Shown here: positions 1 to 56,381 of the stretch, in pieces
Numbering within the stretch: the stretch's first letter is position 1
How the letters are laid out: each line of letters opens with the position of its first letter
Sequence record: LC778249.1
Length of the DNA: 64,000 nucleotides
Strand: one strand, 5' to 3'
The notes under the pieces: generated by a model
Databases searched by the model: none
Told to the model about the DNA's origin: nothing
The model's input: only the letters and a program-made list of their open reading frames with translations
Made by a program: the position numbers and the translations under genes

Positions 1-12
1 TAATCGAAGATT

Positions 13-127
13 GCGGCGTTAGCCGCTAACTCGTTGAATCATAACGAAAAGACAAAGTAAATTCTCATATAAGATATATAAGACATTTTATTTTGTCTTT
101 CTAGCTCGCTTCGCTCGCGGTCTTCGA
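13..127. repeat. Dispersed intergenic element, copy 1 (GC hairpin + IHF-like site + AT-rich palindrome)
   Basis: 42-100 matches 42440-42498 at 57/59 nt; GCGGC-gtta-GCCGC hairpin; TCGAAGA/TCTTCGA outer inverted repeat. Confidence 0.85.
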
Positions 128-135
128 CTTTTTAC

Positions 136-163
136 TTGACATCAATTGGCAGATAGCTATACT
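136..163 (+). promoter_or_regulatory. sigma70-type early promoter
   Basis: TTGACA-16-TATACT followed by SD AAGGAG. Confidence 0.75.
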
Positions 164-185
164 GGAGACATTAAAGGAGAACACT

Positions 186-362
186 ATGAACATTTTTAAA
201 CGTCTACTGAATCGCATGAAGTACAAACCGATGATCAAGATCAATGCGTATGCTATGCAGATTCATACCGCGTCTGGTGCTTCTGTGTGTACTCCTGACG
301 GTATTGCTGTTAAGCAGCGTATCGAACGGCTCAAACGTGAAATGAAAATCAATAGAGGTTAA
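186..362 (+). CDS. Hypothetical protein, 58 aa (not in ORF track)
   Basis: AAAGGAGA SD, ATG 186, MNIFKRLLNR...KINRG*, stop abuts next gene. Confidence 0.75.
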   Translation: MNIFKRLLNRMKYKPMIKINAYAMQIHTASGASVCTPDGIAVKQRIERLKREMKINRG

Positions 363-364
363 TT

Positions 365-910
365 ATGATTGTTAAGGTAAATGATGTAAAACGTCTGAAT
401 GTCGGCGATAAATTCTTGTTTTGCAAGGATCGCGTTGTTCAGATTCAAAGCATCGAAGGCAAGAAAGTCGTTGTTATCGATATCGAAGACGGCACAGTTA
501 TCAACATGGAATTCTTCCAAGATCATGGCAAATCGTATCGGTATCGCTATGATATGGGTATGGGATTCTGTCGTGGTAGCGGTATGAACTCTCGTTATGG
601 TAGCAGTTTCGGTAACATGTATGACTTCGGTGTAAGAGAGCCGATTCGAGCCGGTGAGCAAATCAAATTCCGTGTTGAAGGCAAAGATCACCAAGGTGTT
701 GTTGCTGCTGTTGGCTCTTATGACATCAAGAAAGGCGAGATCACTTTCAACAACAAAGCCGCGAAAAATGCAATCGTGGTTATTGCAAACGGGGTTGAAC
801 GTGTTATCATTGGTTGCAATCAAACACTCTATTTTGTAGAGCCGGACGCAAATCAGCGTATGTGGATCAACAATACCCACATTTGCACAATCGAAGGATA
901 CAGAGCATGA
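365..910 (+). CDS. Hypothetical beta-rich two-domain protein (paralog array)
   Basis: GAGG SD; C-half similar to 907-1212. Confidence 0.85.
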   Translation: MIVKVNDVKRLNVGDKFLFCKDRVVQIQSIEGKKVVVIDIEDGTVINMEFFQDHGKSYRYRYDMGMGFCRGSGMNSRYGSSFGNMYDFGVREPIRAGEQIKFRVEGKDHQGVVAAVGSYDIKKGEITFNNKAAKNAIVVIANGVERVIIGCNQTLYFVEPDANQRMWINNTHICTIEGYRA

Positions 911-1212
911 TTAAACGTATCGATGCCGAAAAATCAACACCGCTGTCTATAAACGAAGAAATCGATTTTTGTAGAAATCACGACACTTACGGAAAGGGTG
1001 TTGTTGTTAAAGTTGGTGATTACAAAGTTGAAAATGATCAGATTCATTTCGTATCGTCCCGCGCTCGAAATGCCGCAATCGTTATGGTAGACGACACGAA
1101 ATATATATTTTTCGCATGTTCGCCTATCGTGTTTTGTTGTCCAGAAAAGAATGATAAGTTTACGTTCTTGGACTCCGAACACTGTGTTATCAATCGATAC
1201 TGGAGTAAATAA
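907..1212 (+). CDS. Hypothetical protein, 101 aa (paralog array)
   Basis: ATGA overlap with upstream stop; GVVVKVGDY..IHF..ARNA matches GVVAAVGSY..ITF..AKNA of 365-910. Confidence 0.8.
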   Translation: MIKRIDAEKSTPLSINEEIDFCRNHDTYGKGVVVKVGDYKVENDQIHFVSSRARNAAIVMVDDTKYIFFACSPIVFCCPEKNDKFTFLDSEHCVINRYWSK

Positions 1213-1766
1213 TGTTTCGTTACGACTGTGAAAAACGAGAGGTTGAAATCGGTAGCACTGTGAAAGTCAAGGGAATGACTGGCACACTGACGGAAGTTTT
1301 GGCAGATCGGATCGTGATAACTGTTTCCAGTATTGCACGAATCGAACTGGTATGTACTGAGTGTGGTCGGTGGTATAGCCCTATGGACAAGTGCCAATCG
1401 CCAAGAATGTATCTGGGTTCGATGTCCGATTATAGCATGGATAATGGCAAGCTGTATTACACAAATACTAGCTCCATTTTGCCTGGCAGCGAAGTTCAGA
1501 TTTCAGTTGATGGTAAACAGATATGGGTACGTGCTATCGCGCAAACTGCTATCACCATGCACTGGAAAAACAACGAAATCGATGTTGATCATGTAACATT
1601 CAGCTCAACGCAAGATGATCCGTGTATGGTTTTGCTTGACGACTTGGGCAGATCTTATTATGCTGTTTACGTTGAGGACGGCGACTATCAAGCAACTCAA
1701 CTTTACACAAACCGAAATGGTGAATTTATTCGCCTCGACCAAGACCTGAATTGGAGATTTGATTAA
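1212..1766 (+). CDS. Hypothetical protein (paralog array)
   Basis: TAATG coupling; shares EIG, NG.LY and DD.GR motifs with 1766-2326. Confidence 0.85.
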   Translation: MFRYDCEKREVEIGSTVKVKGMTGTLTEVLADRIVITVSSIARIELVCTECGRWYSPMDKCQSPRMYLGSMSDYSMDNGKLYYTNTSSILPGSEVQISVDGKQIWVRAIAQTAITMHWKNNEIDVDHVTFSSTQDDPCMVLLDDLGRSYYAVYVEDGDYQATQLYTNRNGEFIRLDQDLNWRFD

Positions 1767-2326
1767 TGTTCGTAATTGAAGCAGACGAAAAGCCGGCTAA
1801 GGTAAAGTTCGAAATCGGCACACAAGCAAGCATCAGCGGTCAAGTTATGACTTTAGTTAGCTTCGACCCTGAACGTGGTATTATGCGTCTGAAATTCCGT
1901 TATAAGGACATGACGGTAGAATGTTTAATGCATCATGTTGTGGGTGATAAGTGGTTCACCGACGATTATACATTCGGCACTGGTATCACTATCGAAAATG
2001 GTGTGCTGTATAAACAGACTGAGGCCCCTGTTGTTCGAGAAATCGCAGTTGGTAGGCCGTTTGTTCTGCATGTTCTGAAAGAAAACGAGAAACCCCAGCG
2101 CGTTGATGTTCGATTTATGACGTTTGTCTATGGTTTCACTTATGCGGAAGATGTTTTGAGTTATAGCTCCACGTCTGGTAATGCCATGGCTAATGCTGTG
2201 ATGTTTCACGACGATTATGGCCGCATTTACGTTATGGATCAACGCTATGACTGGTATCGACATGAAAACGGTTGGTTTAAACGAGTTAATATTAAATCCC
2301 AGGCAAAACTGAAATATCAGATCTAA
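1766..2326 (+). CDS. Hypothetical protein (paralog array)
   Basis: TAATG coupling; paralog of 1212-1766. Confidence 0.85.
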   Translation: MFVIEADEKPAKVKFEIGTQASISGQVMTLVSFDPERGIMRLKFRYKDMTVECLMHHVVGDKWFTDDYTFGTGITIENGVLYKQTEAPVVREIAVGRPFVLHVLKENEKPQRVDVRFMTFVYGFTYAEDVLSYSSTSGNAMANAVMFHDDYGRIYVMDQRYDWYRHENGWFKRVNIKSQAKLKYQI

Positions 2327-2365
2327 CTAAATAGAGTCATGACATTAACTATGGAATGACTCTAT
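2327..2365 (+). promoter_or_regulatory. Late promoter plus RBS-occluding hairpin of gene 49
   Basis: CTAAATA 2327-33; ATAGAGTCAT/ATGACTCTAT 10-bp stem just before ATG 2367; same design as T4 gene 49 translational control. Confidence 0.7.
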
Positions 2366-2366
2366 C

Positions 2367-2852
2367 ATGTTGTTAACTCCCAAAACCTACGATGCCGCAA
2401 AAGAAAAACTCTATCATGAGCAAAACGGCATCTGTCCAATCTGCAAACGTGAACTCGACCCAGAAATCAACAAGAATCACCTAGACCATGATCATGAGCT
2501 AGATGGTACAAATGCGGGTCGAGTTCGCGGTCTCCTGTGTAATCTATGTAATGGGTCGGAAGGACGAACTCGCCACGAGTTTATGCGCTCTGGGCTGGCC
2601 GGTCGTGGGATTGACTACATAGATTATCTAGAATCTCTTCTAGCTTATCTAAAGCGGGATGCCAGCGCAAACGATATTCACCCCAAACTTGTCCCCGATT
2701 TGAAAAAACGTTTCGCTCGCCAAGACAAGCCAACAATGATTGCCGAAATGCAAAAATACGGTTTCGCATACAACGACGGAATGACCAAAGCCGAGCTGTG
2801 TAAAGCATTCAATAAAGAACTACCAAAATTTATGAAAAAACTTCATAATTGA
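2367..2852 (+). CDS. 49: Recombination endonuclease VII
   Basis: CPIC..HLDHDH..VRGLLCNLCN motifs. Confidence 0.95.
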   Translation: MLLTPKTYDAAKEKLYHEQNGICPICKRELDPEINKNHLDHDHELDGTNAGRVRGLLCNLCNGSEGRTRHEFMRSGLAGRGIDYIDYLESLLAYLKRDASANDIHPKLVPDLKKRFARQDKPTMIAEMQKYGFAYNDGMTKAELCKAFNKELPKFMKKLHN

Positions 2853-2853
2853 T

Positions 2854-2888
2854 TTGACATCAAGGCCAGTCTCACGTAGACTGGCTTT
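2854..2888 (+). promoter_or_regulatory. Early promoter overlapped by hairpin/terminator
   Basis: TTGACA-17-TAGACT; GCCAGTCT/AGACTGGC inverted repeat. Confidence 0.7.
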
Positions 2889-2925
2889 ATTGTTTTAGAA
2901 CACAATCAAACCAGAGGAAATTGTT

Positions 2926-3342
2926 ATGAATATCGATCTGTTTAACCGCATTCAAAGCTATCGCGAATTCAAAGACGTTTACGATCAAATGCGTCTCACT
3001 CTGCAAAAAGTTCTGCAAGGTGAAATCACCCGCGAAGAGTGCAAGAAAGGTCTGTGTGATCTTATCGCTACCAATGAATTTGGCGTGGATCTCGCTACTC
3101 CGAAAGTCCTGGAAGGCTACAAACACTGGAGCGGTAAAGTCGGTTATATCATCTATGTTGGTGAAATCGACCGCGAAGCACTGAAACAAGATCGTCATAT
3201 GTATCTGAGTCGTGCCGTTGCTCAATACGAAAATGAGCAATATGTTGGCGACAATGACGAATACTGGGAAGCGCGTCTGGAACTGGCTCGTCACTGGATC
3301 CGTTATATCGACGAAACCAAAAACTTAGCGAAATGTGATTGA
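2926..3342 (+). CDS. Hypothetical protein, paralog family A (copy 1)
   Basis: GAGGA SD; GLC, GYKHWSG, YWEARLELARHWIRYID motifs. Confidence 0.9.
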   Translation: MNIDLFNRIQSYREFKDVYDQMRLTLQKVLQGEITREECKKGLCDLIATNEFGVDLATPKVLEGYKHWSGKVGYIIYVGEIDREALKQDRHMYLSRAVAQYENEQYVGDNDEYWEARLELARHWIRYIDETKNLAKCD

Positions 3343-3366
3343 CACCAGATTTCATCCTGCTAATAT
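3339..3366 (+). promoter_or_regulatory. Early promoter
   Basis: TTGACA-16-TAATAT with extended TG. Confidence 0.7.
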
Positions 3367-3395
3367 AGCTACATCAAACAACTGAGGAAAATGTT

Positions 3396-3797
3396 ATGAC
3401 CAACTACATCGACCACGCCAAAACTTATCACACTGTACGCGATACTCTGCAAGATGTTCTGGACGGCAATATCAGCCGCAAGGATTGCAGTCAAGGTCTG
3501 TGTACTGTCCTTGAGATTGACAGTCTCCCGATTCGTCCGCGTTTGAATAGCGAAGAAGTCCTTCGTGGTTACAAATTCTGGAGTGGTCAGAAAGGCTATT
3601 CAATCTATATCGGTGAAACTACCGAAGCTGGTATTGCCGAAATGGATTACGTAAACGAGGCAATCAATCAGTTTAAACTGGAAGCCCGTTGCGCTGGTGA
3701 TAAAGAATTCCGCGATCAATACTGGGAAGCTCGTCTGGAACTGGCTCGTCACTGGATCCGTTATATCGACGGCGTTATCGAATCTAGCAAGAAATAA
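3396..3797 (+). CDS. Hypothetical protein, paralog family A (copy 2)
   Basis: GAGGA SD; same motifs; 54-nt near-identical block with copy 1. Confidence 0.9.
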   Translation: MTNYIDHAKTYHTVRDTLQDVLDGNISRKDCSQGLCTVLEIDSLPIRPRLNSEEVLRGYKFWSGQKGYSIYIGETTEAGIAEMDYVNEAINQFKLEARCAGDKEFRDQYWEARLELARHWIRYIDGVIESSKK

Positions 3798-3798
3798 G

Positions 3799-3838
3799 TT
3801 GTAATCTAATGTTGGTGTGATATTATGCTCACACCAAC
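3799..3838 (+). promoter_or_regulatory. Early promoter with -10 in loop of a 10-bp inverted repeat
   Basis: TTGTAA-16-TATTAT; GTTGGTGTGA/TCACACCAAC. Confidence 0.65.
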
Positions 3839-3854
3839 TATTGAGGAAATAATC

Positions 3855-4319
3855 ATGAGTGTTCGTGAAATCGTTAGTTTAGCAATCTCAACCGTTTTCA
3901 TGCCAAAGAGCAAGCGTATTCGTGCTCATTTCTTGGATAACTCGGATCTGGTAAAGTATTACCCGACTCTGATGTTTCTGATTGAGAACAAAAAGAAATA
4001 TGAAATAGATATGCGGACACTGTGCCGAGTTGCTAACAAAGAATACACTCGCGAGCAAGTGAAATCTGGGCTTTGTCGTATGATCAATCGTGATCTGAGT
4101 GATGCGCTCCGAGATCCGGACATTCTGAAAGATTACAAATTCTGGAGCGGTAGTCAATCTTGTGTAATTACCGTCAAGAATGAAGGGCTATGTGGTATCG
4201 AGTATCATAGCGAATACATGCAGCGTGGTTCGGATGAATATTACGAGGCTCGCGTTGAACTTGCCCGTTATTGGCTTAACGTCATGACATTTGTCAAGAA
4301 CAAATACGATCAATTCTAA
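3855..4319 (+). CDS. Hypothetical protein, paralog family A (copy 3, N-terminally extended)
   Basis: GAGGA SD before ATG 3855; GLC, DYKFWSG, YYEARVELARYW. Confidence 0.85.
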   Translation: MSVREIVSLAISTVFMPKSKRIRAHFLDNSDLVKYYPTLMFLIENKKKYEIDMRTLCRVANKEYTREQVKSGLCRMINRDLSDALRDPDILKDYKFWSGSQSCVITVKNEGLCGIEYHSEYMQRGSDEYYEARVELARYWLNVMTFVKNKYDQF

Positions 4320-4326
4320 ATAAGAG

Positions 4327-4347
4327 TCCCGCTAATGCGGGATTTTT
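4327..4347 (+). terminator. Rho-independent terminator
   Basis: TCCCGC-taat-GCGGGA-TTTTT. Confidence 0.8.
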
Positions 4348-4369
4348 ATTTCTCTTAAAGATGTAATCA

Positions 4370-4398
4370 GTTTACATTGACTCAGATCAATGTATAAT
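4370..4398 (+). promoter_or_regulatory. nrdA promoter
   Basis: GTTTACA...TG-TATAAT, resembling the T4 early consensus. Confidence 0.7.
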
Positions 4399-4432
4399 AC
4401 CAACATCCTCTCCACCAACACAACGAGGTAAC

Positions 4433-6667
4433 ATGTTAGTAAGAAAATCAAGCGGAATTACCGAAGAATTCACCGTAGGCAAGCTGTTCAAGATTCTGAG
4501 TTTTGCAACAGAAGGGACAAGTATTAGTCCGAAAGAAATCCTAGACGGTATTATGCCTTCTATCACCGAAGGTATGAGCACTAAGCGAATCCAAGAGATC
4601 GCTATCAAGTTCGCCGCTGACCGCATATCAATCGAACAATCCGATTATCAGTATGTAGCCGCTCGACTGCAAATGTATGCATTGCGCAAGCAAGTTTACA
4701 ATCAGTTTGACCCGATTCATCTGAAACCGCACGTTATGGATCTCGTCATGGACGGGAAATATGACCCAGAACTGTGCTCCAAATGGACAGATGAAGAGTT
4801 TGAGGAGCTGAATGCTTACATCAAGCATGATCGAGATTTCAATCTGGCTTATGCTGGCGTAATGCAGTTCAAAGAGAAATACCTGGCGAAAGATCGCAGC
4901 ACTGGTGAAGTGTTCGAAACTCCGCAAATGCTGTATATGCTTGTTGCAATGTGCTTGCATCAAGAAGAAAAAACAGATAGACTGCAAAAAGTCAAAAACT
5001 TCTATGACGTAACATCGCTTGGCAAGCTGAGTCTGCCAACTCCGATTCTCGCAGGTGTTCGCACCCCGACTCGTCAGTTTAGCTCTTGTGTCAAGATCGA
5101 ATGTGGAGACGAACTAGATAGCATCAACGCTACCGCTAGTTCTATCGTTGACTATATCAGCAAACGCGCTGGTATCGGCATCAACGGTGGTGCGATTCGT
5201 GCCGAGGGCTCTCGCATTCGTAGCGGTGAAGTGCGACATACTGGTATTATCCCATTCTGGAAATACTTCCAGACTGCGGTAAAGAGCTGTTCACAGGGCG
5301 GTGTTCGCGGCGGTGCTGCAACTCTATATTACCCAATGTGGCACCTCGAAGTTGAAAAAATCCTTGTGCTCAAGAATAACAAGGGCGTTGAAGAAAACCG
5401 AATCCGACATCTTGACTACGGTATCCAAATCAATAAGCTGATGTTAGAACGGTTGAAAAACGACGACTATATTACCTTGTTCAGTCCCGACGTTCAGAAA
5501 GGCGAGCTTTACGATCTGTATTATAGCGACCCCGTGAAGTTCCGCGAGCTATACGAAATGCTGGAGAATGAGCCGTTCCTTATCAAGAAACGTATCAAGG
5601 CTTCTGAGTTGTTCAACCTGTTTGCTCAAGAGCGAAGCGGCACCGGTCGAATCTATCCGATGTTCATCGACAACGTAAACAGCGCGACTCCGTACAAAGA
5701 GCCGATTCGTCAGTCTAACCTGTGTATTGAAATCGCACTACCTACCTATCCCGTTCATCGTGATGGCACCGGTGAGATTGCACTTTGCACCTTAGCAGCG
5801 TACAATCTGGGAGCGATTGAAGGATATAACGACTTCTTGAACGTAGCACGTGCCGCCGTTCGAGCGTTGGACAATCTGCTTGATTATCAAGAGTATCCAG
5901 TTGTTCAAGCACTAGCTGCCAAGAAGCGTCGCGCACTCGGTATCGGTGTAACCAACTTTGCTTATTTCCTTGCCAAGAACTTTGTTAAGTATTCTGATGG
6001 CAGCGCGAACAAACTTGTTCATCGTACTATGGAAATGATGCAGTTTGCTAACATCGTTGCTAGTATGGAACTTGCTAAAGAACGTGGCGCGAGCGAGTGG
6101 CATCACAAGACTAAGTGGGCCGACGGTCTTCTGCCGATTGATTGGTATAACAAAAACGTTGACAGCATCGTTCCTAATGATCTGAAAATGGATTGGGAAT
6201 GGCTACGTGGCGAGATTAAAAAGTACGGTATGCGCAATGACACACTGAGCGCGTTTATGCCGTGTGAAAGTTCTAGCCAAATTACCAACAGCACAAACGG
6301 TATCGAGCCACCGCGTGGCCTAGTGAGCACCAAGCAATCGAAAGATGGTGTGTTTAATCAGCTAGTGCCGGAGGTAGAAATGCTTGGTAGCGAGTATGAA
6401 ACCGCTTGGGCGATGGCTAAACGTGGCATGAAGGGTTACCTCGATATTGTCGCTATCATGCAGAAGTTTGTGGATCAGATGATCAGTGCAAACACTTATT
6501 ACGTCCCGTCGATTTATCCGGGTGATAAGCTGCCGATGAAAGTCGTTCTGAAAGATATGAGTAGAGCGCAAAAATATGGCGTTAAATCGCTGTACTATTC
6601 TAATCTTCACGATGGCGCTGATGGTACCGAAGAAACCGATTCTTCTTGTGACACTTGCAAAGTCTAA
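4433..6667 (+). CDS. nrdA: Ribonucleotide reductase class Ia alpha subunit
   Basis: ATP cone, FSSC, SNLCIE, C-terminal CDTC. Confidence 0.97.
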   Translation: MLVRKSSGITEEFTVGKLFKILSFATEGTSISPKEILDGIMPSITEGMSTKRIQEIAIKFAADRISIEQSDYQYVAARLQMYALRKQVYNQFDPIHLKPHVMDLVMDGKYDPELCSKWTDEEFEELNAYIKHDRDFNLAYAGVMQFKEKYLAKDRSTGEVFETPQMLYMLVAMCLHQEEKTDRLQKVKNFYDVTSLGKLSLPTPILAGVRTPTRQFSSCVKIECGDELDSINATASSIVDYISKRAGIGINGGAIRAEGSRIRSGEVRHTGIIPFWKYFQTAVKSCSQGGVRGGAATLYYPMWHLEVEKILVLKNNKGVEENRIRHLDYGIQINKLMLERLKNDDYITLFSPDVQKGELYDLYYSDPVKFRELYEMLENEPFLIKKRIKASELFNLFAQERSGTGRIYPMFIDNVNSATPYKEPIRQSNLCIEIALPTYPVHRDGTGEIALCTLAAYNLGAIEGYNDFLNVARAAVRALDNLLDYQEYPVVQALAAKKRRALGIGVTNFAYFLAKNFVKYSDGSANKLVHRTMEMMQFANIVASMELAKERGASEWHHKTKWADGLLPIDWYNKNVDSIVPNDLKMDWEWLRGEIKKYGMRNDTLSAFMPCESSSQITNSTNGIEPPRGLVSTKQSKDGVFNQLVPEVEMLGSEYETAWAMAKRGMKGYLDIVAIMQKFVDQMISANTYYVPSIYPGDKLPMKVVLKDMSRAQKYGVKSLYYSNLHDGADGTEETDSSCDTCKV

Positions 6668-7844: not shown

Positions 7845-7867
7845 AATCCGCCTTCGGGCGGATTTTT
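7845..7867 (+). terminator. Rho-independent terminator
   Basis: AATCCGCC-ttcg-GGCGGATT-TTT. Confidence 0.85.
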
Positions 7868-7881
7868 ATTTCCAAAAAGTG

Positions 7882-7909
7882 TTGACACATGGATTAGACC
7901 TGATATGAT
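7882..7909 (+). promoter_or_regulatory. Early promoter cassette
   Basis: TTGACA-16-TATGAT with extended TG; near-duplicate of 8630-8657. Confidence 0.75.
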
Positions 7910-7944
7910 GTCCATATCGAAACAAAACAACTGAGGAAAATATC

Positions 7945-8350: not shown

Positions 8351-8623
8351 ATGACTAAAGTATGTGTTTTCATTGCCCCTAACTTTCGCAACGTCTGGAT
8401 TACAACTCGCGTGGCTTATACCAAGCTGGATTGCGATGGTGCGTTGAAACGCGCAAAAGATCGCGATTGTAAGTATGCAGGCAAAATCGACCCGTATCTG
8501 AGTCTTGTTCTGGAAGATCGCCAAGCGTATTGCACAAACAACGAATATCAGGATGTCCAATCTGTTATTCAGTTGTGCGAGTCGGCTGGTTTTAGTGTTC
8601 TTGGTTTCCCGAAAAATAAATAA
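8351..8623 (+). CDS. Hypothetical protein, 90 aa
   Basis: GAGGA SD, own promoter. Confidence 0.85.
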   Translation: MTKVCVFIAPNFRNVWITTRVAYTKLDCDGALKRAKDRDCKYAGKIDPYLSLVLEDRQAYCTNNEYQDVQSVIQLCESAGFSVLGFPKNK

Positions 8624-8629
8624 AAGTTG

Positions 8630-8657
8630 TTGACACACGATTCCGACCTGTTAATAT
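8630..8657 (+). promoter_or_regulatory. Early promoter cassette
   Basis: TTGACA-16-TAATAT with extended TG. Confidence 0.75.
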
Positions 8658-8689
8658 ATCCACATCGAAACAAAACTGAGGAAGAAATC

Positions 8690-16964: not shown

Positions 16965-16986
16965 AGGCTCCTTCGGGAGCCTTTTT
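16965..16986 (+). terminator. Rho-independent terminator
   Basis: AGGCTCC-ttcg-GGAGCCT-TTTT. Confidence 0.85.
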
Positions 16987-16996
16987 CATTTAATTA

Positions 16997-17096
16997 GTGG
17001 CTACGCCACAGCGCATCGCGCTAACTCATTGATATTCTTATGGAAGATAAAATAGATTCTCATTAAAGATTTATAAGAGATTTTGTTTTGTCTTAC
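16997..17096. repeat. Dispersed intergenic element, copy 2 (diverged)
   Basis: GTGGC-tac-GCCAC hairpin, TAACTCATTGATA IHF consensus, AAGATAAAA..ATTCTCAT..AAGAT.TATAAGAGATTTT.TTTTGTCTT. Confidence 0.75.
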
Positions 17097-17099
17097 CAG

Positions 17100-17128
17100 T
17101 TTACAAACTGATCTCTTCCGTGTAGTAT
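17100..17128 (+). promoter_or_regulatory. Early promoter for 47-46
   Basis: (G)TTTACA-17-TAGTAT. Confidence 0.7.
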
Positions 17129-17156: not shown

Positions 17157-18185
17157 ATGAAGATTATCATTGAAGGTGATAAGCACGTCGGGACCCAGAA
17201 AGATAGTGCTTACATGACTAACGCGATCTTGCGTGGCTCTATCTTCCTGTGTAACTATGCCAAAGAGCATGGTATCCGACACATGATACAAACTGGCGAC
17301 TGGTTCGACGTTCGTTCCGGTCTGAGTCAAGAAACGCTAAAGTTCCAGCGTGAGCAACTGACTCCGATCTATCAAGAAGCATTCGATGACATCTATGTTA
17401 TCGTAGGCAATCATGATATGCACGTTAAGGACAAAATCAGTCCTAACAGTGTTAACGAAGTGTTTCATGGCATAGAAAAGTTCCATGTTATCGAAACTCC
17501 GACCACTATCGGGTTCGCTGATACTCTGTGGGATCTGTTCCCATGGAAATGTGATGAAAATGAAAAAGAAATCGAGAAATACGCTGCCGATACCAACTCA
17601 GACTATTGCGTTGGTCACTGGGAGCTTGACGGATTCGAGTTCTACAAAGGCATTCCGTCAACCGGTGAAAGCATGGAATTCCTGAGTCGCTACAAGCAGG
17701 TATACAGCGGCCACTATCATACTTCCAGCAAGAAAGCAAACATTCATTATCTGGGAACTCCTTATACTCTGACTATGGGTGACAGCAACGAGATTCGCGG
17801 ATTCTGGGTTTTCGATACCGATACTAAGACAATCGAGTTTGTTGCAAACCCCGATATGTGGCATATCCGAGTTGATTACCGTAGTGATTTTGATCCTAAA
17901 GTCATTGACAAGTGCAAGGACAAGGTAGTAGAATTGATCATCTATGAGTTCGACGATAAGTTGGACGCTGTTATGGCTCAATTCGAAAACGTGTGCTTTG
18001 AGTTCAGACAAAAGCAGATGTATACCTTTGCTTCTGATGTTGAAGACATCACGGAGACGAAGAAAGTAATTGAGCAAATGAAAGATTACATCCAGGGGTT
18101 GGCTGTAGATGAAGACGACAAGAAAGCCGTTGATCGCTACATTCAAGAACTTTATGCCAATGCTGTTCATAGCAAAGGAGAATAA
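17157..18185 (+). CDS. 47: Recombination endonuclease subunit (Mre11/SbcD-like)
   Basis: GDKHVG, TGDWFD, VGNHD, GHWE, SGHYH. Confidence 0.95.
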   Translation: MKIIIEGDKHVGTQKDSAYMTNAILRGSIFLCNYAKEHGIRHMIQTGDWFDVRSGLSQETLKFQREQLTPIYQEAFDDIYVIVGNHDMHVKDKISPNSVNEVFHGIEKFHVIETPTTIGFADTLWDLFPWKCDENEKEIEKYAADTNSDYCVGHWELDGFEFYKGIPSTGESMEFLSRYKQVYSGHYHTSSKKANIHYLGTPYTLTMGDSNEIRGFWVFDTDTKTIEFVANPDMWHIRVDYRSDFDPKVIDKCKDKVVELIIYEFDDKLDAVMAQFENVCFEFRQKQMYTFASDVEDITETKKVIEQMKDYIQGLAVDEDDKKAVDRYIQELYANAVHSKGE

Positions 18186-20494
18186 TGGACATTTTATTCC
18201 ACTGGGTCGAGTACAAAAATATTATGTCGGTGGGCGCAAAGCCCATCCGCATCGAACTCGATCACCATAAGAAGACGCTGGTAACTGGTACTAACGGTGC
18301 AGGTAAATCTACCTTCATCGAAGCGATTACGTTCTTGCTTTACGGCAAAGCGTTTCGCGATGTTCCTAAACCGTTGCTTGTCAACAGTCATAACAAAAAA
18401 GGCCTTCACGTTGAAGGCGAGATTTCAGTCGGCAAAGACAAATATCATATTGTCCGCGGCATCAAGCCGAACGTGCTGAAAATCACCAAGAACGGTGAAG
18501 ATCTAAAAGAAGTTGCTAGTGCCACAGAATATCAAGCATATTTCGAGGAGAAATTGCTGGGTATCAGCTATGACAGCTTCAAACAGATCATTGTTCTGGG
18601 TACTGCTGGCTATAAGCCATTCATGGAACTGCCTGCTGGTAAGCGTCGCGAACTCGTTGAGGATCTGCTTGATGTCTCTGTTATCGGCGAAATGGATAAG
18701 CAAAACAAAGCGTTGATCAAAGAGTTGAAAGGACAACAAGATCAAAATAAAGCCATGCTTGCCTCTGCCGAAAGCGAACGCGCAACTGCTGAATCTGCTA
18801 TCGAAGCACAGAAGAAACAAACCGGGATGCTTGTCAACGTTTTGGTGACTAATTTCCGTTCTGATATTGATCGCGCTAAAACATCGAAAGATTTGGCGAA
18901 TATAAATCAGGAGAAGATTGACAACGCAGTTGAACCCGTGTATGACGAAACTGCCGAACGAGAAATAATTGCGAAATATCAGCCGCAGGCTCTTATTGAA
19001 CAACTTGCGACTCTGAGTGAGCAGCGTAACAACGACATCGCGGATATCAATTCGGACATTGCTTGTCTCCAACTAGATCAACCGTTCGATTGTGCTTTGG
19101 ATCACGATGTTGGTGAGTTGGAGAAATCTAAGCCAACTGATGACGATCTTCGCGCTGCAACTGCACTGGTGCCTATTCCAGATGAACTTGTGATTCAAGA
19201 CGTCGCCGAACCGGTTGCAGTTGATTATACCAACGAGAAATTCAAGCTGGACAATACCGCTTGGGATATTCGCGGTAAAATATCTGCACTTCAAGAACGT
19301 AAAAAGTTCTTCGAGAAAGGTGGCGCGTGTCCTACTTGCGGTACTGATTGTTCGTCTCATGCAGATCATAGCATCGAGGAACTTGATTCTGACATCGAGA
19401 AACTGGAAGCCGAGCTGGCTGTTATCTCTGATGAAACATCTCGGTTAACTTCCTATGAGCTGAACTATAAGCGAGAACTTGCGGCATATAATCAGATCAT
19501 TGAACAGAATCGAGAAGCTGAACGAGATTACGAGCGAGCCACCGCAAGATATGCGCAACAGTGTCGGAATTTGAGTGAAAATCACCACGCGACAATTGCA
19601 TTCATCGACAAGCAGATCTCGGAAATGACGCTCAATCATGAGCGCCAGAAAGTGTCGTATAACGAGCGCCTTAACGGTCTATACGAAAAGAAACGACACA
19701 TCGAGGCTACATACGAGAAAGCTAAGGACGCGCTCCAACGTCGGATTGATAGTATTGGAGACGAACGGGATGCCAAGATCGCCGAACTGAAATCAAATTT
19801 CAGCTCGACACTAGCTGCGCATCGTGCTAATCTTGAAATGTTGGCTATGAATGTTAAGACCAACATGGAAACGTATGAAGAAGCGGCAAATCGTGCAAAA
19901 GATTTGAAAAAACAGATTGACGAGTTGAACGCTACAGAGTATGATACTTCCAAGCTTGAAGAGATTGAAAGTCGCATCGAAGAGATCAAGTCTGGCATTG
20001 CCGACATTGTTCTTGAGTTGCACCGCCGTTCAATCGTGGCTGATATGTTGAAAGACAACGGCGTAAAAGCCCATATTGTTAAACGCTATATACCAGTGTT
20101 CAACAAGAAGATCAACGACTACTTGAAAGCGTTGGGTGCGGATTATGTGTTCGCATTGGACGAAGGATTCAATGAATCAATCAAGTCTCGCGGTCGAGAA
20201 GAATTCTGTTATGCTTCCTTCTCGGAAGGGGAGAAAGCACGAATTAATCTTAGTTTGTTGTTTACATGGCGAGACGTTAGCAGTATGATCAGTGGTGTTA
20301 ATATCAACTTGCTTTGCATGGATGAGGTTTTCGACGGTAGTTGTGATGAAGCTGGCATTGTAGGCATTAACAAAATGCTCAATGACATGAAATCCAACAT
20401 CATCGTCATATCGCACCGCAAAGACGCGATGGACGACAGCTTTGATCGCCACATTCGTATGCAAAAGCAAGGTCGCTTTACTACGATGGTGTAA
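18185..20494 (+). CDS. 46: Recombination ATPase (Rad50/SbcC-like), elongated
   Basis: GTNGAGKS, CPTC hook, FSEGEKAR, MDEVFDGS. Confidence 0.95.
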   Translation: MDILFHWVEYKNIMSVGAKPIRIELDHHKKTLVTGTNGAGKSTFIEAITFLLYGKAFRDVPKPLLVNSHNKKGLHVEGEISVGKDKYHIVRGIKPNVLKITKNGEDLKEVASATEYQAYFEEKLLGISYDSFKQIIVLGTAGYKPFMELPAGKRRELVEDLLDVSVIGEMDKQNKALIKELKGQQDQNKAMLASAESERATAESAIEAQKKQTGMLVNVLVTNFRSDIDRAKTSKDLANINQEKIDNAVEPVYDETAEREIIAKYQPQALIEQLATLSEQRNNDIADINSDIACLQLDQPFDCALDHDVGELEKSKPTDDDLRAATALVPIPDELVIQDVAEPVAVDYTNEKFKLDNTAWDIRGKISALQERKKFFEKGGACPTCGTDCSSHADHSIEELDSDIEKLEAELAVISDETSRLTSYELNYKRELAAYNQIIEQNREAERDYERATARYAQQCRNLSENHHATIAFIDKQISEMTLNHERQKVSYNERLNGLYEKKRHIEATYEKAKDALQRRIDSIGDERDAKIAELKSNFSSTLAAHRANLEMLAMNVKTNMETYEEAANRAKDLKKQIDELNATEYDTSKLEEIESRIEEIKSGIADIVLELHRRSIVADMLKDNGVKAHIVKRYIPVFNKKINDYLKALGADYVFALDEGFNESIKSRGREEFCYASFSEGEKARINLSLLFTWRDVSSMISGVNINLLCMDEVFDGSCDEAGIVGINKMLNDMKSNIIVISHRKDAMDDSFDRHIRMQKQGRFTTMV

Positions 20495-41402: not shown

Positions 41403-41428
41403 AAAAGCCACCTTCGGGTGGCTTTTTT
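41403..41428 (+). terminator. Rho-independent terminator
   Basis: AAAAGCCACC-ttcg-GGTGGCTTTT-TT. Confidence 0.85.
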
Positions 41429-41441
41429 ATTTTAAAAAGTG

Positions 41442-41469
41442 TTGACTTGTGATTCTGAACCAGTATACT
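41442..41469 (+). promoter_or_regulatory. Early promoter
   Basis: TTGACT-16-TATACT. Confidence 0.7.
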
Positions 41470-42288: not shown

Positions 42289-42402
42289 TAGGAAGACATT
42301 GGAGCGATTCCTAGCGATAGTCTATGCGATGATATCAATTAGTTAAGGAATCGCTCCAAATCGATTTGATGAATAGATAGTATAATAATTAAACTCCAAA
42401 AT

Positions 42403-42530
42403 GTCGCGCCAGCGACTGCGAAGCTAATCTATTGATTTCTAACGAAAAGACAAAGTAAATTCTCATATAAGATATATAAGAGATTTTATTTTCTCTTTTT
42501 GTTACATAGTAACAATTAGCGGCTATGCCG
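42403..42530. repeat. Dispersed intergenic element, copy 3
   Basis: TAATCTATTGATT IHF consensus; 57/59 identity with copy 1; GCGGC-tat-GCCGC hairpin. Confidence 0.85.
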
Positions 42531-42591
42531 CAGTGTTGACACACGTTAGCTAGTGTGTAATAATTTGATCTCTACTTAATGAGGTAATGAA

Positions 42592-47601: not shown

Positions 47602-50600
47602 TTAGTTAACGGTTCTCAGATTATATCCGACAACTTTTCGAACTCTACCATTTTCCCAAGCGGTAACGAATGTCCGGTTATCAGCAGAGAATCTTCCGCC
47701 CCAACCTAATCCACCTGAACCACCAGAAATATCGTAGTTCCAACCAATTGCTTGTAGATATTCTAGATCATATCTAGTGAATGTTTTCGGACTAACTAAT
47801 CCCATATCATCCCAGCCAACAACAAACATTATCATGTCAAAGTCTGTCCATGGACGAGTTAATGCGAAGTTTCCTCCACCAACATCTCCATCAAATATCG
47901 TGACTGCGCTAGTAGCTCTGATATTATTGTGTGTGTGCGTGTTTGACGGCGGCGGGTTATTTACAGAATATACGCGGTCACCAGAATCATATACTCCAGT
48001 TCCTCCGTATACTCCACCCGGAGATCTAAAGTTACCACTGATATCAAAAGTATAAATTCCCATTGTTCCTTTAGTACCACTTTCACCGGAACCAACCCGA
48101 ATAATACCTTGACCCCAAACGTTGCCAGAACGCAATACTCCAAGTTCAACGTCAGTTGTATATCCAACACCCGAAACAACGGAACGTCCCTTCACGATTT
48201 GATAATAATCAGACGAACCAGCCACGGCTCCAAAATCAATTTGAATAGGAGCTTCTCTTGCCCATTGATCTGCATATGCGTGTGAACCACCGGCTGCCCA
48301 GTTAGTTCCATACATAGTCAATCCGGTTCCCTCTGCTCGCATTTGCATGTATCGTTTCGCTTCACCAAATGAACCATTCGACTGACCAAAGTTCAAATCG
48401 CCTGTTGTATTATCAAGCCATACAATACGAGCGTGTTTTCCAGGAACATGAAATTCTAATACTGGATTACCGCCTGTGTTAATCTGGAATTGACCATTAC
48501 CATACACATATGTTGGTCTACGCAATAGTATTTTACTAGCTTCAAATACAGCGATTGGGTTAGTTTCACTGGGAGCAACGCCATCGGAAATAGCAAGTCC
48601 TTCAAATCCTTTTCCGGTTTGTCTGTTAATATGGAACCAAGCGTTTGATGTATTATTGATAAACAAAGCACTCGCGCCCTCGCCGAATGTAGCAGCGCCG
48701 GATTGTCCATCTTTCATCAACATCTGATTGTTAGCGTTGATTTGAATACCTGCGTTGGCATTCCAAGGAGCAGCACCAACTCCAAGATAAATGAAATCAA
48801 TTTCTCCGGTTGGCTTTCCGTGGAATCCAAATGCCGCTTTTCTTGAACCATCGGTCTCAATAGCAGTAAATCCTCTTGCCCAATCAGTTGATACTCCAGA
48901 TAATGGAGTAAAGAAATATTCGGAAGTGGAATTAGTTCCTCCGACTTCATATCCATGTGTTGCCAGTACCCTTCTATTAGGCAAAAATTCTAATGCTCTA
49001 TAAGTAGCATCGACGCTAATATAAGGAATCTTAGATGTACCGGAATCAATTTCCAATGCCAACTTCTTGGAGTTCTTGTCTACCATGATATAATCATTCG
49101 AGACAAACGCTTTGGTGTTGTTTAATGCACCAGTCATTGAATCGCCGGCTTTCGCAACGTTCTTCGCGTCTACTGCGTCAACATATGCCTTATTAACTAG
49201 ATGTCCAGCAGCCGTTCCCTGTTTGCCCAGTGTAATAGTACCATCATTCGCGATAATAGTTTCAACTGTTGTTGTTCCTATGCCTTGAGGACGCAAATGG
49301 ATTGTTCCTGTTGCACCAGCTCCGCCACCGATAATAGTTCTACCGTCTGCACCAACAAACATACCTTGAGTGCTATTAGTCGAACGAACGAAACCATAAT
49401 CACCAGAAGATCTGAATGCAGTTGCTACAACTGGTCCAGTTGCGTTAATAGATCCATCACCAAGGAAAGAAACAAGAGCGTTTTGTCCTTCGTTGCCGTG
49501 ACTCAAAGTAAGAGAGTTTGATTCTGATGCCAAATGGAATCTTGTATCTGCCGCATCTTGGAAACTAATACTACCTTTATCATTCACCATAATTGAGTTT
49601 TTGATTTTAGCAGCAGTCAGTGTTCCTGTCATAGCATCACCAGCGCGAGACACTAGATTTAAATCATCATTTGTCGGTAGATTATGAAGACTAAGAATCT
49701 CTTCTCTGACACTAATGTCGGTAACTGTCAATCCGGTTGCGTCTGGAATAAGTATCGGATGTGCTCCATATCTAAGTCCATCAACTACAACATGTGCCAT
49801 ACTAATTGCGGAACGATACAGCGCAATATATTCAACGCCGTTGTATGTATGATATACCAGTTTTGTGCCAGATGTTTTTGCGCCGGATAGATAATGGATC
49901 CTTGCATACTGTTCGGTATATCCGCTATATACTGCAACTTCTGCATAATCACTTTGCAAATTAGAGGTAGTAGCACCGCGATTGAAAATAATTTTTCCTA
50001 TAAATCCATTTTTCTCAATAGGAGTAGAACTAGAACGCTTCGCAAGAAGAATTAGAGAAGGTTTAGCATCCGCTGTATTTCCTAATGCTTTTACAGTATG
50101 AACGACGGATGTTGCCGCTACTTCGATTCCGTTTCCTACTACTAGATCTTGATTCACTTTTAGTTTATCGACGTCTCCGCCACGTTCATCGATTTGTTTT
50201 ACCCAAGGTGTCCAAGCCATTGTACCATCATTTCTAGTTCTGATGTATGTGGAGCCTTGTGTTCTATCTGTCGCGATTTGAGTCACGAAGGTATTAGCGT
50301 CTTTATCTGATCCAATAACAAACATTGTACCGTAATCCAATGGAGGAGGATTAACTGATCCAGTTGCACGTGCCAAATACAAGTTATAAAAACCGGTTGA
50401 CTCGTATTCGTCAAAGTTGATTGGACCCCTGATATTCTTAGTCTTACCTTCTAGACCAACTTTATCTTTGATAGAAGCCCATGGAATAAATCCATCTGTA
50501 TCAACAAGAACACGTCCATTACCCGCATTCCATTTCATTGCTTGATGCAATACAACGTTTTTTGTTGTATATTCTTCGGCAGTTGTATTATATCCCAAAT

Positions 50601-51597
50601 ACAGATCACCACTGGCAGCGCCTAAAGTAACGTTGCCGTTATTATGATCTCGCATAATAGAATATGTCTTGCTGTTATACAATGAACGCAATCCACCAAC
50701 ACCTTCGATGTTGATATATCCACCGTTCTTCATGTTACCACCAGAACGGCTCAAAGCGTCGGCTGGAAGATCGTCTAGTTTAACTTTGTCTTGAGCACTC
50801 ATAGAACCGGAAGCAGTTCGCGAAGCAGCCGTGATGGCCAGCGTTGGATTGACGCCTCCAGTTGTAGTCAATGGTGCAGTAGTCACAATGCCTTGGACAG
50901 CAGTACCGACTTTGGTATCGACGTATTTCTTGTTTGCTGCATGAGTATCAGCGGTTGGCTGATCTTCCAAAACAACGGGGTCAGTAAATGTCTTTGTTCC
51001 AGCGATTGATTGAGCGCCAGTAATCTTTACATTCTGTGCATCAAGGGTATCAATCTTGGTATTTGCGGTAGCCAGATCAGCGGTGAGTTTATCGGTAGTT
51101 GTTTCTGCGAACTGCATCGCTTTATCAACTTCACGATCTACATAATCTTTCCGAGCTGCGTGAGACGCTGCCGATGGTGTCGTTGCAGGGATAAAAACTT
51201 GACCATCTCGGAATCCGACATAGTTAGCGTTTTTGTTTGTGTAAATTCTAACTTCGCCAACATCGTTTGTAAGAACTTGAATACCAGAACGCGGGGTTCC
51301 ATCCGCTTTACGACTTGCAATAAGCCAGTGTGCACCAGCGGTGTTATCTTTATCCATGTTGAATGCTGCGTTTGGAGCTTGTCCCCATCCCACATCATTC
51401 CCGACTGCAATAACTTTTCCAGTTGTAACGATATCGCCTTTTAGATTAATACCGCCATTAATTGTCTGACCGCCTTTTGAGGTGATCACATCGAATTCTT
51501 TATAAAACAGGCTATCATCAAGAGGGTTTAGCTCAAGAATGCCCTGGTGCCAAATCAGATTACCTCCGATTTGTGATCCTAGTTTAAGATCTGCCAT
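47602..51597 (-). CDS. Distal long tail fibre A (gp36-gp37 fusion), 1331 aa
   Basis: gp36-type N-terminus MADLKLGS..IWHQG; fibre repeats; no S74 domain. Confidence 0.9.
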   Translation of the reverse strand: MADLKLGSQIGGNLIWHQGILELNPLDDSLFYKEFDVITSKGGQTINGGINLKGDIVTTGKVIAVGNDVGWGQAPNAAFNMDKDNTAGAHWLIASRKADGTPRSGIQVLTNDVGEVRIYTNKNANYVGFRDGQVFIPATTPSAASHAARKDYVDREVDKAMQFAETTTDKLTADLATANTKIDTLDAQNVKITGAQSIAGTKTFTDPVVLEDQPTADTHAANKKYVDTKVGTAVQGIVTTAPLTTTGGVNPTLAITAASRTASGSMSAQDKVKLDDLPADALSRSGGNMKNGGYINIEGVGGLRSLYNSKTYSIMRDHNNGNVTLGAASGDLYLGYNTTAEEYTTKNVVLHQAMKWNAGNGRVLVDTDGFIPWASIKDKVGLEGKTKNIRGPINFDEYESTGFYNLYLARATGSVNPPPLDYGTMFVIGSDKDANTFVTQIATDRTQGSTYIRTRNDGTMAWTPWVKQIDERGGDVDKLKVNQDLVVGNGIEVAATSVVHTVKALGNTADAKPSLILLAKRSSSTPIEKNGFIGKIIFNRGATTSNLQSDYAEVAVYSGYTEQYARIHYLSGAKTSGTKLVYHTYNGVEYIALYRSAISMAHVVVDGLRYGAHPILIPDATGLTVTDISVREEILSLHNLPTNDDLNLVSRAGDAMTGTLTAAKIKNSIMVNDKGSISFQDAADTRFHLASESNSLTLSHGNEGQNALVSFLGDGSINATGPVVATAFRSSGDYGFVRSTNSTQGMFVGADGRTIIGGGAGATGTIHLRPQGIGTTTVETIIANDGTITLGKQGTAAGHLVNKAYVDAVDAKNVAKAGDSMTGALNNTKAFVSNDYIMVDKNSKKLALEIDSGTSKIPYISVDATYRALEFLPNRRVLATHGYEVGGTNSTSEYFFTPLSGVSTDWARGFTAIETDGSRKAAFGFHGKPTGEIDFIYLGVGAAPWNANAGIQINANNQMLMKDGQSGAATFGEGASALFINNTSNAWFHINRQTGKGFEGLAISDGVAPSETNPIAVFEASKILLRRPTYVYGNGQFQINTGGNPVLEFHVPGKHARIVWLDNTTGDLNFGQSNGSFGEAKRYMQMRAEGTGLTMYGTNWAAGGSHAYADQWAREAPIQIDFGAVAGSSDYYQIVKGRSVVSGVGYTTDVELGVLRSGNVWGQGIIRVGSGESGTKGTMGIYTFDISGNFRSPGGVYGGTGVYDSGDRVYSVNNPPPSNTHTHNNIRATSAVTIFDGDVGGGNFALTRPWTDFDMIMFVVGWDDMGLVSPKTFTRYDLEYLQAIGWNYDISGGSGGLGWGGRFSADNRTFVTAWENGRVRKVVGYNLRTVN

Positions 51598-51623
51598 TAT
51601 AGACTCCTCTCAGTTTATAGCAG

Positions 51624-51630
51624 TATTTAG
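51624..51630 (-). promoter_or_regulatory. Late promoter for fibre A
   Basis: CTAAATA on - strand, then GAGAGGAG SD. Confidence 0.7.
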
Positions 51631-51632
51631 CA

Positions 51633-51654
51633 AAAAGGCACCCGAAGGTGCCTT
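51633..51654 (-). terminator. Terminator after gp38-like gene
   Basis: AAGGCACC/GGTGCCTT stem with T tract. Confidence 0.8.
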
Positions 51655-52093: not shown

Positions 52094-52123
52094 AATTTAA
52101 ACGGGGATTTCTCCCCGTCCTCC

Positions 52124-56338: not shown

Positions 56339-56363
56339 TTCTAATCCTCATGTTAGTTTTCAT

Positions 56364-56371
56364 TATTTATG
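56364..56371 (-). promoter_or_regulatory. Late promoter for fibre B
   Basis: CATAAATA on - strand, then GAGGA SD. Confidence 0.65.
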
Positions 56372-56381
56372 AGATTGGAAT

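Follow-up and report, generated by a model that had tools for sequence, protein, structure and literature searches.

Palindromic repeats with IHF-consensus sites and origin-like features at seven loci of Aeh1-group T4-type phages

Replication origins are, to our knowledge, known for phage T4 and for none of its many relatives. The stretch of DNA analysed here (the window, 64,000 nucleotides) corresponds to bases 124001–188000 of Aeromonas phage phiWae14 (LC778249.1), a T4-type phage of the Aeh1 group with a genome of 225,840 bp. Window bases 1–6000 align to record positions 124001–130000 at 100% identity. Relatives of phiWae14 include phiAS5 (Chrysonvirus), Aeh1 and Ah1 (Cinqassovirus), and PX29 and the AsFcp phages (Angelvirus). 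A sequence-only reading of the window noticed three look-alike non-coding sites, each combining GC hairpins, a match to the IHF consensus, an AT-rich palindrome and a promoter, and proposed that they were dispersed origins or nucleoprotein-organising sites using host IHF. This raises the question of whether the three sites belong to one family, which parts of them are constrained, and what such an element might do for the phage.

Distribution and evolution of the repeat

The three look-alike sites are real copies of one element. A repeat finder recovers a single 76-nt family from the window, at 25–100, 17020–17095 and 42423–42498, with core identities to copy 1 of 72% (copy 2) and 88% (copy 3). 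The close likeness of copies 1 and 3 is as first read, with a 42-nt identical run and 57 of 59 shared bases over 41–99 versus 42439–42497. The whole element is non-coding and hairpin-rich, ~130–190 bases long, and all copies are intergenic or overlap gene ends.

A wider search of the genome and its relatives, which the sequence-only reading had called for, yielded more copies. Whole-genome BLAST finds seven in phiWae14, at 23.7, 53.2, 84.3, 124.0, 141.0, 166.4 and 211.3 kb (record positions), so that the count of three holds for the window and the genome carries seven. A profile built from the phiWae14 copies finds eight in Aeh1 and seven diverged copies in PX29; the eighth reflects the tandem duplication of one locus in Aeh1 and Ah1. 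The family thus recurs at seven loci in three diverged genomes, and according to the annotations each copy is flanked by corresponding neighbour genes in phiWae14, Aeh1 and PX29. The loci are:

S1 (copy 2 of the window): upstream of gene 47/46
S2 (copy 1): upstream of the gene cluster leading to gene 49
S3: between the ADP-ribosylglycohydrolase gene and a 3.6-kb ORF
S4: between genes 54 and 26
S5: upstream of gene 15
S6: between pseT.2 and vs.1
S7 (copy 3): upstream of the Ndd-like gene and gene 52

Among the neighbouring products, gp47/gp46, the Ndd-like protein and gp52 have PHROG matches in the window. All 21 of 21 loci (seven loci in three genera) are occupied, with no loss and no extra locus in the three fully scanned genomes, which argues against a functionless or currently mobile element. 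No flanking direct repeats are evident in alignments of the copies.

The family is confined to a narrow group of phages. Of 50,697 phage records searched by BLAST, 13 contain the element, all within the Aeh1-group clade. Among 2.9 million viral contigs, a 29-mer core pattern matches Ah1, Aeh1, phiAS5 and PX29 only; in these scans a 17-mer was too loose and gave chance matches only, while 23-mer and 29-mer patterns were specific. Neither the 185,579 GTDB genomes of bacteria and archaea nor the JGI metagenomes contain the 29-mer, and a host origin of the repeat is rejected on this ground. A literature search of the Aeh1 genome papers, the papers on promoter stem-loop (PeSL) cassettes and other sources found no prior description. 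The element is an undescribed repeat family of the composite palindromic/IHF kind with origin-like features.

The sites are evenly spaced. Inter-site gaps range from 17 to 45 kb, and their coefficient of variation lies below that of uniform random placement (P = 0.0018, 0.0003 and 0.0017 in phiWae14, Aeh1 and PX29), an evenness exceeding 99.8%, 99.97% and 99.8% of random placements, respectively; because the three genomes are syntenic, this regularity counts once rather than three times.

Orientation is less constant. At S2 the element runs with its flanking genes in phiWae14 and against them in Aeh1, Ah1 and PX29; at S7 it runs with them in phiWae14 and PX29 and against them in Aeh1 and Ah1; S6 is antisense to its flanking genes in all genomes compared. 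Since orientation differs between genera, inversion must be tolerated and function should be independent of the direction of neighbouring transcription. Where the element is co-oriented with its neighbours, it falls within the 3′ untranslated region of the gene before it and is hence also transcribed; transcripts include the element at most loci.

Core identity is 0.83–0.94 within a genome and 0.72–0.81 between genomes. Between genomes, orthologous and non-orthologous copies are equally alike (0.81/0.81, 0.73/0.72 and 0.76/0.75 in the three comparisons). Orthologues being no closer than non-orthologues, the copies evolve in concert, through gene conversion or a shared partner. Alignable, mostly coding DNA is 76–80% identical between genera, about equal to the element; it is therefore conserved like a gene, and no more. 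A coding role was also considered. One minus-strand frame is open across the core and the plus strand is closed in all frames; about 12% of equally long AT-rich stretches would be open by chance (own estimate), and orientation flips between genomes. The three small ORFs annotated over elements in Aeh1 are probably not genes.

Anatomy of the element

In its own orientation the element consists of a left module, one or two GC hairpins, the IHF consensus, a variable block, a central hairpin, a spacer and two further GC hairpins. The features of the three window copies are as follows:

3–11, plus strand: outer mini-hairpin of copy 1, ATC-GAA-GAT, right after the stop codon of the upstream gene (1–3)
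13–26, plus strand: inner GC hairpin of copy 1, GCGGC-GTTA-GCCGC, which includes GCGTTAGC, a mini-hairpin DNA sequence (PMC13037366)
25–100, plus strand: conserved 76-nt core of copy 1
27–39, minus strand: IHF-consensus site of copy 1, one mismatch
46–102, plus strand: AT-rich central hairpin (imperfect palindrome) of copy 1, alignment columns 22–78
103–128, minus strand: right-flank GC hairpins of copy 1, inverted counterparts of the left hairpins, with GCGAAGC at 108–114 (minus strand) and GTC-TTC-GAC at 120–128
136–163, plus strand: early-type promoter TTGACA-16-TATACT of the downstream gene, adjoining copy 1 and outside the element
16965–16987, plus strand: canonical intrinsic terminator of the upstream unit (7-bp GC stem and T run), just left of copy 2
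16997–17022, plus strand: left GC hairpins of copy 2, GTGGC-TAC-GCCAC and AGCGC-ATC-GCGCT, with loops not of the G..A type
17020–17095, plus strand: conserved core of copy 2, which has no right-flank hairpins
17022–17034, minus strand: perfect IHF-consensus site of copy 2
17041–17097, plus strand: AT-rich central hairpin of copy 2
17100–17128, plus strand: promoter TTTACA-17-TAGTAT before gene 47/46 (SbcCD-like nuclease; coding from 17157)
42364–42402, plus strand: left module of copy 3, promoter-like and semi-conserved, ending in CTCCAAAA, a type found only beside elements
42403–42416, plus strand: left hairpin of copy 3, GTCGC-GCCA-GCGAC
42418–42424, plus strand: left mini-hairpin of copy 3, GCGAAGC
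42423–42498, plus strand: conserved core of copy 3
42425–42437, minus strand: perfect IHF-consensus site of copy 3
42444–42500, plus strand: AT-rich central hairpin of copy 3
42499–42515, no strand assigned: right spacer of copy 3, with a small palindrome of its own
42519–42531, minus strand: right hairpin of copy 3, GCGGC-TAT-GCCGC
42533–42542, minus strand: right hairpin of copy 3, GTG-TTGA-CAC, overlapping the -35 box
42536–42564, plus strand: early-type promoter TTGACA-17-AATAAT (with TG) of the Ndd-like gene and topoisomerase gene 52

The left module is semi-conserved and ~30 nt long; of the seven loci only S1, where the canonical terminator stands in its place, is without it. The module follows the pattern TAnnCT, ~7 nt, CCAGAAA, and points into the element. 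An nhmmer profile of the module finds matches only beside elements and nowhere else in three genomes, and the module therefore belongs to the element. It resembles a -10 box with a start site, yet fits neither sigma-70 nor the Aeh1 late consensus CTAAATA. Its restriction to elements and its lack of CTAAATA led to rejection of the idea that it represents a general class of middle or late promoters.

The IHF region consists of an invariant GCTAA, four variable bases and TTGAT, with the consensus read on the opposite strand. The earlier claim of minus-strand matches in all three window copies is borne out, including the single mismatch in copy 1. As a putative protein-binding site, the region has two faces. 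Its variation supports the claim: across 30 copies (24–29 distinct cores), the 13-mer varies at its four Ns and nowhere else, as would be expected of a real site. The PX29 copies weaken it, with a perfect consensus in 2 of 7 versus 20 of 23 copies from phiWae14, Aeh1 and Ah1. Matches to WATCAANNNNTTR are not rare as such, with four in the 64-kb window versus 5.0 expected by chance; two of the four are inside elements, and a third (42333–42345) lies just left of copy 3. The candidate sites inside elements combine WATCAANNNNTTR with an AT-rich flank. The block that follows the consensus is variable in sequence and constant in length (~10 nt).

On the right side, a spacer of 0–30 nt leads to two GC hairpins that are the reverse complements of the left hairpin types, so that the whole element is one long imperfect palindrome. 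The GC hairpins and the imperfect palindrome of the original description are thus present, and its layout needs one correction: GC hairpins flank both sides of a long quasi-palindrome. The reverse complement of the copy 3 spacer is homologous to the left arm, without the IHF consensus. The asymmetry of the palindrome comes from the left module and the IHF site.

The sigma-70-like promoters that had been read from 136, 17100 and 42536 exist, and it is their inclusion in the element that fails. Across the loci, a distance of 5 to ~45 nt separates the palindrome from the promoters on its right. These are of the early type at S1, at S2 in phiWae14 and at S7 in phiWae14 and PX29, and of the late CTAAATA type at S3, S4 and S5; inverted copies have no promoter on the right side. 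With variable distance, class varying by locus and absence at inverted copies, the right-hand promoters are neighbours outside the element. An internal sigma-70 promoter in the core (TTGATT-18-TAGATT) was also considered and rejected, because 6 of 7 PX29 copies have TAGATC and so lose the key final T. Elsewhere in the window, true terminator-plus-promoter cassettes occur at 7845–7939, 8622–8687 and 41405–41469.

Pairing and strand polarity of the hairpins

Both strands of every window copy fold far better than shuffled sequence. The folding z-scores (plus/minus strand) are -5.9/-5.6 for copy 1, -3.4/-2.4 for copy 2 and -5.0/-5.7 for copy 3. RNAalifold applied to full-length copies recovers the central hairpin only, since hairpins of several types and lengths occur in the flanks, which were therefore analysed copy by copy.

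The central hairpin is AT-rich and spans 57 nt. In the gapless alignment of 30 copies (29 of them distinct), its 23 pairs are formed in 94% of cells, compared with 47–64% when the partner is slid by 1–3 columns. Four pairs are changed on both sides (C:G to G:C, A:U to G:C, C:G to U:A and A:U to G:C), and 0 of 500 shuffles reach the covariation score; most of these double changes are common to the PX29 copies, so that independent events are few (~3–4). Mispairs are also uneven. G.T occurs at 10 pair positions and A.C at 4, with G.T alone in the well-supported part of the stem, so that pairing favours the element's own plus strand, whatever the direction of the neighbouring gene. The stem contains a C.C mismatch in four of the phiWae14 copies. 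Sequence itself is conserved as well, with 41 of 80 core columns invariant in the 30 copies and a sequence-conserved apical palindrome region.

The flank stems vary with compensatory differences (GCGCC/GGCGC versus GCGGC/GCCGC; GCGTAGC versus ACGTAGT), and their loops show a consistent strand polarity. Among distinct left hairpins, 8 have G..A loops, 1 has a T..C loop and 6 have other loops, the last mostly from the atypical S1 copies. On the right, 20 loops read T..C on the plus strand and hence G..A on the minus strand, none reads G..A on the plus strand and 10 are of other types. Within 110 nt of site centres, the motif xCG-N(1-2)-AGy is enriched 7–14-fold, and 47 of its 52 occurrences are on the strand that reads 5′ to 3′ toward the centre. 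Mini-hairpins of the form GCGNAGC or GCGNNAGC, with a G..A loop closed by C:G, are present in the element; copies other than the window examples have GCGTAGC and GCGGAGC. No T runs follow the element's hairpins, which are therefore not intrinsic terminators, and just one of ~9 distinct tetraloops obeys the GNRA rule of RNA. The left hairpins of S1, which come after a canonical terminator, are without G..A loops.

Mini-hairpins of the GCGNAGC/GCGNNAGC type are a known class of DNA structure. As DNA they melt at 70–76 °C, only G-N-A loops qualifying, and the RNA versions are much weaker (PMC13037366). Mini-hairpin DNA resists the 3′ exonuclease of T4 DNA polymerase and binds SSB poorly (PMC13037366). 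It occurs at the primase start sites of G4, St-1 and alpha3 (GCGTTAGC, as in copy 1), as well as in ssiA and the N4 promoters (PMC13037366). Loop type, strand polarity and the misfit to the GNRA rule are the main reason for placing the function of the element at single-stranded DNA rather than RNA.

Candidate functions

By its anatomy, the element could be a place at which the duplex opens and copying begins, and so a candidate start of replication. In T4, oriF and oriG are each a promoter with an AT-rich unwinding element; the phage has five origins, about one per 34 kb, which share no common sequence motif (PMC3016281). The element resembles oriF (uvsY) and oriG (34) as a non-coding region of ~100 bp in which a promoter-like block leads into a potential AT-rich unwinding region, here a 55–60-nt AT-rich segment downstream of the left module and hairpins. 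Both occur at about one site per 32–34 kb, and the phage family and replication proteins are shared. T4 origins, unlike the element, have no motif and use MotA middle promoters; the element is a conserved repeat that combines hairpins and dyad symmetry with an IHF consensus. MotA is absent from the Aeh1 group (PMC1524935), which therefore cannot use middle-promoter origins of the T4 type. A second parallel lies in the primase signals of the G4, St-1 and alpha3 complementary-strand origins and RSF1010 ssiA, which also have GC hairpins with C:G-closed G-N-A or G-N-N-A loops. The likeness extends to exact GCGTTAGC and GCGAAGC, to variation confined to the middle loop base and to location on the would-be template strand. 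These signals are single and act on single-stranded DNA of phages or plasmids, whereas the candidate hairpins of the element are paired in mirror image around an AT-rich palindrome in a double-stranded T4-type genome.

The preferred reading, held tentatively and with less than even confidence, is that the element is a DNA site acting in cis once the duplex has opened, and that it serves as a start of replication or of recombination-dependent replication. IHF binding, unwinding, priming or breakage, and replication activity are all predictions from the anatomy. Host IHF, or a similar bending protein, would bind the conserved YAANNNNTTGAT site in the left arm, and the resulting bend beside the AT-rich quasi-palindrome of 55–60 bp might promote its melting or extrusion. 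On each side, the strand running 5′ to 3′ toward the centre could then fold one or two GC mini-hairpins with C:G-closed G-N-A or G-N-N-A loops, after which comes an invariant GCT. T4-type primase has GCT and GTT as its template triplets. Two forks moving outward from the centre would have the mini-hairpin strands as their leading-strand templates; equally, these strands would be the 3′ tails produced by resection of a central break. Either way, replication might start in both directions, and seven sites, about one per 32 kb, would be enough for the whole 225-kb genome.

Counted in favour of a replication or recombination start are the seven syntenic loci, their even spacing, the independence from orientation, the compensatory changes, the strand polarity of the loops and the conservation of the IHF consensus. 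Counted against it are the weak IHF matches in PX29, the lack of a motif in T4 origins, the C.C mismatches and the transcription of the element at co-oriented loci. None of the seven loci matches a T4 origin map position (near soc, rI.-1, gene 5, uvsY and rnh/34). GC skew switches at the sites no more than at random positions, which is weak evidence against the reading, since T4-type replication is expected to leave no skew mark. Replication origins are usually redundant, and the absence of site loss in any genome fits a local function better than redundant origins. These phages may also carry base modification, which could affect recognition by IHF or primase (PMC8056088). A more far-reaching version of the same reading, speculative and judged unlikely as a whole, holds that MotA-less T4-type phages would use seven sequence-defined, evenly spaced, bidirectional origins at which primase, rather than the RNA polymerase transcripts of T4, starts the leading strands at mirror-image mini-hairpins flanking an IHF-assisted AT-rich palindrome.

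A role at the RNA level, rather improbable on balance, would make the element a REP/BIME- or ERIC-like tail of the upstream transcription unit that protects or defines the mRNA 3′ end or forms a processing site (e.g. for RNase III), its near-symmetry permitting either orientation. Co-oriented elements do start at or inside the upstream coding end, as copy 1 does at the stop codon, and at S3 the ADP-ribosylglycohydrolase gene overlaps the left part of the element; the promoter of the next unit usually follows. The compensatory hairpin changes, the excess of G.T over A.C in the central stem and the loss of G..A loops from the left hairpins of S1, where a terminator already precedes, are also in keeping with such a role. 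The details of the hairpins argue the other way: GCGNAGC hairpins of two base pairs are weak in RNA (PMC13037366), the tetraloops are with one exception not GNRA, T runs are lacking, and the hairpins on the far side are constrained on the opposite strand. The G.T asymmetry tracks the orientation of the element and not local transcription, S5 lies in a divergent promoter region, and the RNA role leaves the even spacing and the conserved apical loop sequence unexplained. In the window, no Rfam 15 family reaches its gathering threshold; the matches that appear at E ≤ 10 are all to generic long hairpins (microRNA precursors) and score far under it.

Among bacterial repeats, the RIP/RIB elements of E. 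coli (BIME-1, two inverted REP hairpins around an IHF site) are comparable in being extragenic, with inverted GC palindromes, an IHF consensus between them and either orientation. They bear no sequence relation to the element and number about a hundred copies rather than seven, and the element is absent from bacterial genomes; it adds a large conserved AT-rich palindrome, and its loci are fixed across genera.

The element might instead act as duplex DNA, a platform for a phage protein and IHF that organises chromosome domains or regulates the adjoining promoters and has no role in replication; this too seems improbable. The conserved apical palindrome and the many invariant core columns agree with it, and the even spacing and the promoter beside most loci could be read in the same way. 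Copies within a genome change together, as would be expected if they co-evolved with a protein, but gene conversion accounts for this equally well. Compensatory pairs and tolerated G.T point to intrastrand pairing instead, the strand polarity of loop letters would be meaningless for duplex recognition, the adjoining promoters vary in distance and class, and no candidate protein was found.

That the element is a relic miniature mobile element, spread once in a common ancestor, then fixed and homogenised by gene conversion and without function of its own, is quite unlikely. Its model is the Correia element of Neisseria (with an IHF site, promoters and RNase III cleavage), which shares a length of 100–190 bp, inverted-repeat ends, an internal IHF consensus, edge promoters and occurrence in both orientations. 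The palindromic ends resemble terminal inverted repeats, and orientation flips at some loci, the tandem duplication in Aeh1/Ah1 and the homogenisation of copies within each genome would also suit a mobile origin. Unlike Correia elements, the repeat has a very low, constant copy number and neither presence/absence variation nor target duplications. Every locus is occupied, with no extra insertion and no empty site in the three genomes, though ~20–25% of alignable bases differ; bacterial genomes, metagenomes and other viral contigs hold no copy, and there is no known transposase partner. Loop letters and stems are visibly constrained, and neutral placement would not give even spacing.

A simple PeSL cassette (a terminator stem-loop with an early promoter that mediates gene shuffling), which the sequence-only reading had named as an outcome that would overturn it, is rejected as very improbable: the element shares with the PeSLs of T4-type phages an intergenic stem-loop beside a promoter, lies between transcription units and in copies 1–3 has GC hairpins followed by sigma-70-like promoters, but PeSLs are short, numerous, defined by an early promoter, indel-associated and located in hyperplastic regions, whereas the element has a long conserved 76-nt core without counterpart in PeSLs (PMC4122927), seven fixed loci and no single promoter class, with a late promoter or none at four of the seven. 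The window has 12 further early-promoter-like GTTGAC-N17-19-TANNNT sites without the core (1.9 expected), among them those of the terminator-plus-promoter cassettes listed above. Around copy 1, phiWae14 and phiAS5 are 97–100% identical from -1750 to +920 with no adjoining indel, and shuffling beside copy 1 is rejected because the replacement between these phages, at 920–1209, is not adjacent.

For the biology of T4-type phages, the element provides a concrete, countable and sequence-defined object, at seven evenly spaced loci, for studying how replication starts without MotA. In it, mini-hairpin DNA motifs with strand polarity occur naturally in a genome that is double-stranded, and the family shows clear concerted evolution and orientation flips. 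Even if it should prove to be no origin, it would be the first composite repeat family of hairpins, IHF site and palindrome described in a T4-type phage.

PeSL-like cassettes in the window

Three further stretches of the window are genuine PeSL-like (promoter-early stem-loop) cassettes:

7845-7939, PeSL-like cassette
8622-8687, PeSL-like cassette
41405-41469, PeSL-like cassette

Each joins a GC stem-loop and its T run to an A-rich segment, GTTGAC(A), a -10 box and a Shine-Dalgarno (SD) sequence; the cassettes repeat one another at 74-81% identity, and the 76-nt core of the element is missing from all three. The promoter pattern GTTGAC-N17-19-TANNNT is found at 12 sites on the window's plus strand (1.9 expected).

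The element in Aeh1 and Ah1

In Aeh1 (NC_005260), three small annotated ORFs span inverted copies of the element:

49489-49671 (sequence L012), Aeh1p059
187049-187153 (L015), Aeh1p285
230599-230766 (L016), Aeh1p349

These are probably not real genes, because the orientation of the element flips between genomes and the element is non-coding elsewhere. At locus S4, the element is single-copy in phiWae14 and PX29 and is duplicated in tandem in two relatives, with a start-to-start distance of ~170 nt:

Aeh1 119980-120249 (L014), tandem duplication
Ah1, positions 4012-4286 of sequence L009, tandem duplication

Paralogous genes and other neighbours

Three small paralogous ORFs lie side by side:

2926-3342, small ORF
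3396-3797, small ORF
3825-4319, small ORF

The first two share a 54-nt stretch at 98% identity (3260-3313 and 3718-3771), suggesting that gene conversion or duplication took place recently. Between phiWae14 and phiAS5, another small ORF, at 907-1212, has either been exchanged or diverged strongly, with ~40% identity over 920-1209 within surroundings that are 97-100% identical. Matching the Aeh1 annotation, the following ORFs are paralogous tail fibre genes:

47602-60404, minus strand, large tail-fibre-like ORFs

Segments are repeated within them at 51464-51598 and 56205-56339 (72%) and at 49130-49199 and 55866-55935 (76%).

Around copy 3 (locus S7), an extra perfect IHF-consensus match, one of just four in the window, lies ~80 nt to the left (42333-42345, plus strand), in the end of the upstream ORF.

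Copy S1 and genes 47/46

The S1 copy (copy 2) is atypical, being without the promoter-like left module and the G..A mini-hairpin loops. A canonical terminator lies upstream of it and genes 47/46 (17157-20494) directly downstream, a placement before these genes that is kept in all genomes examined. Genes 47/46 encode an SbcCD/Mre11-Rad50-like nuclease, whose substrates are hairpins and DNA ends.
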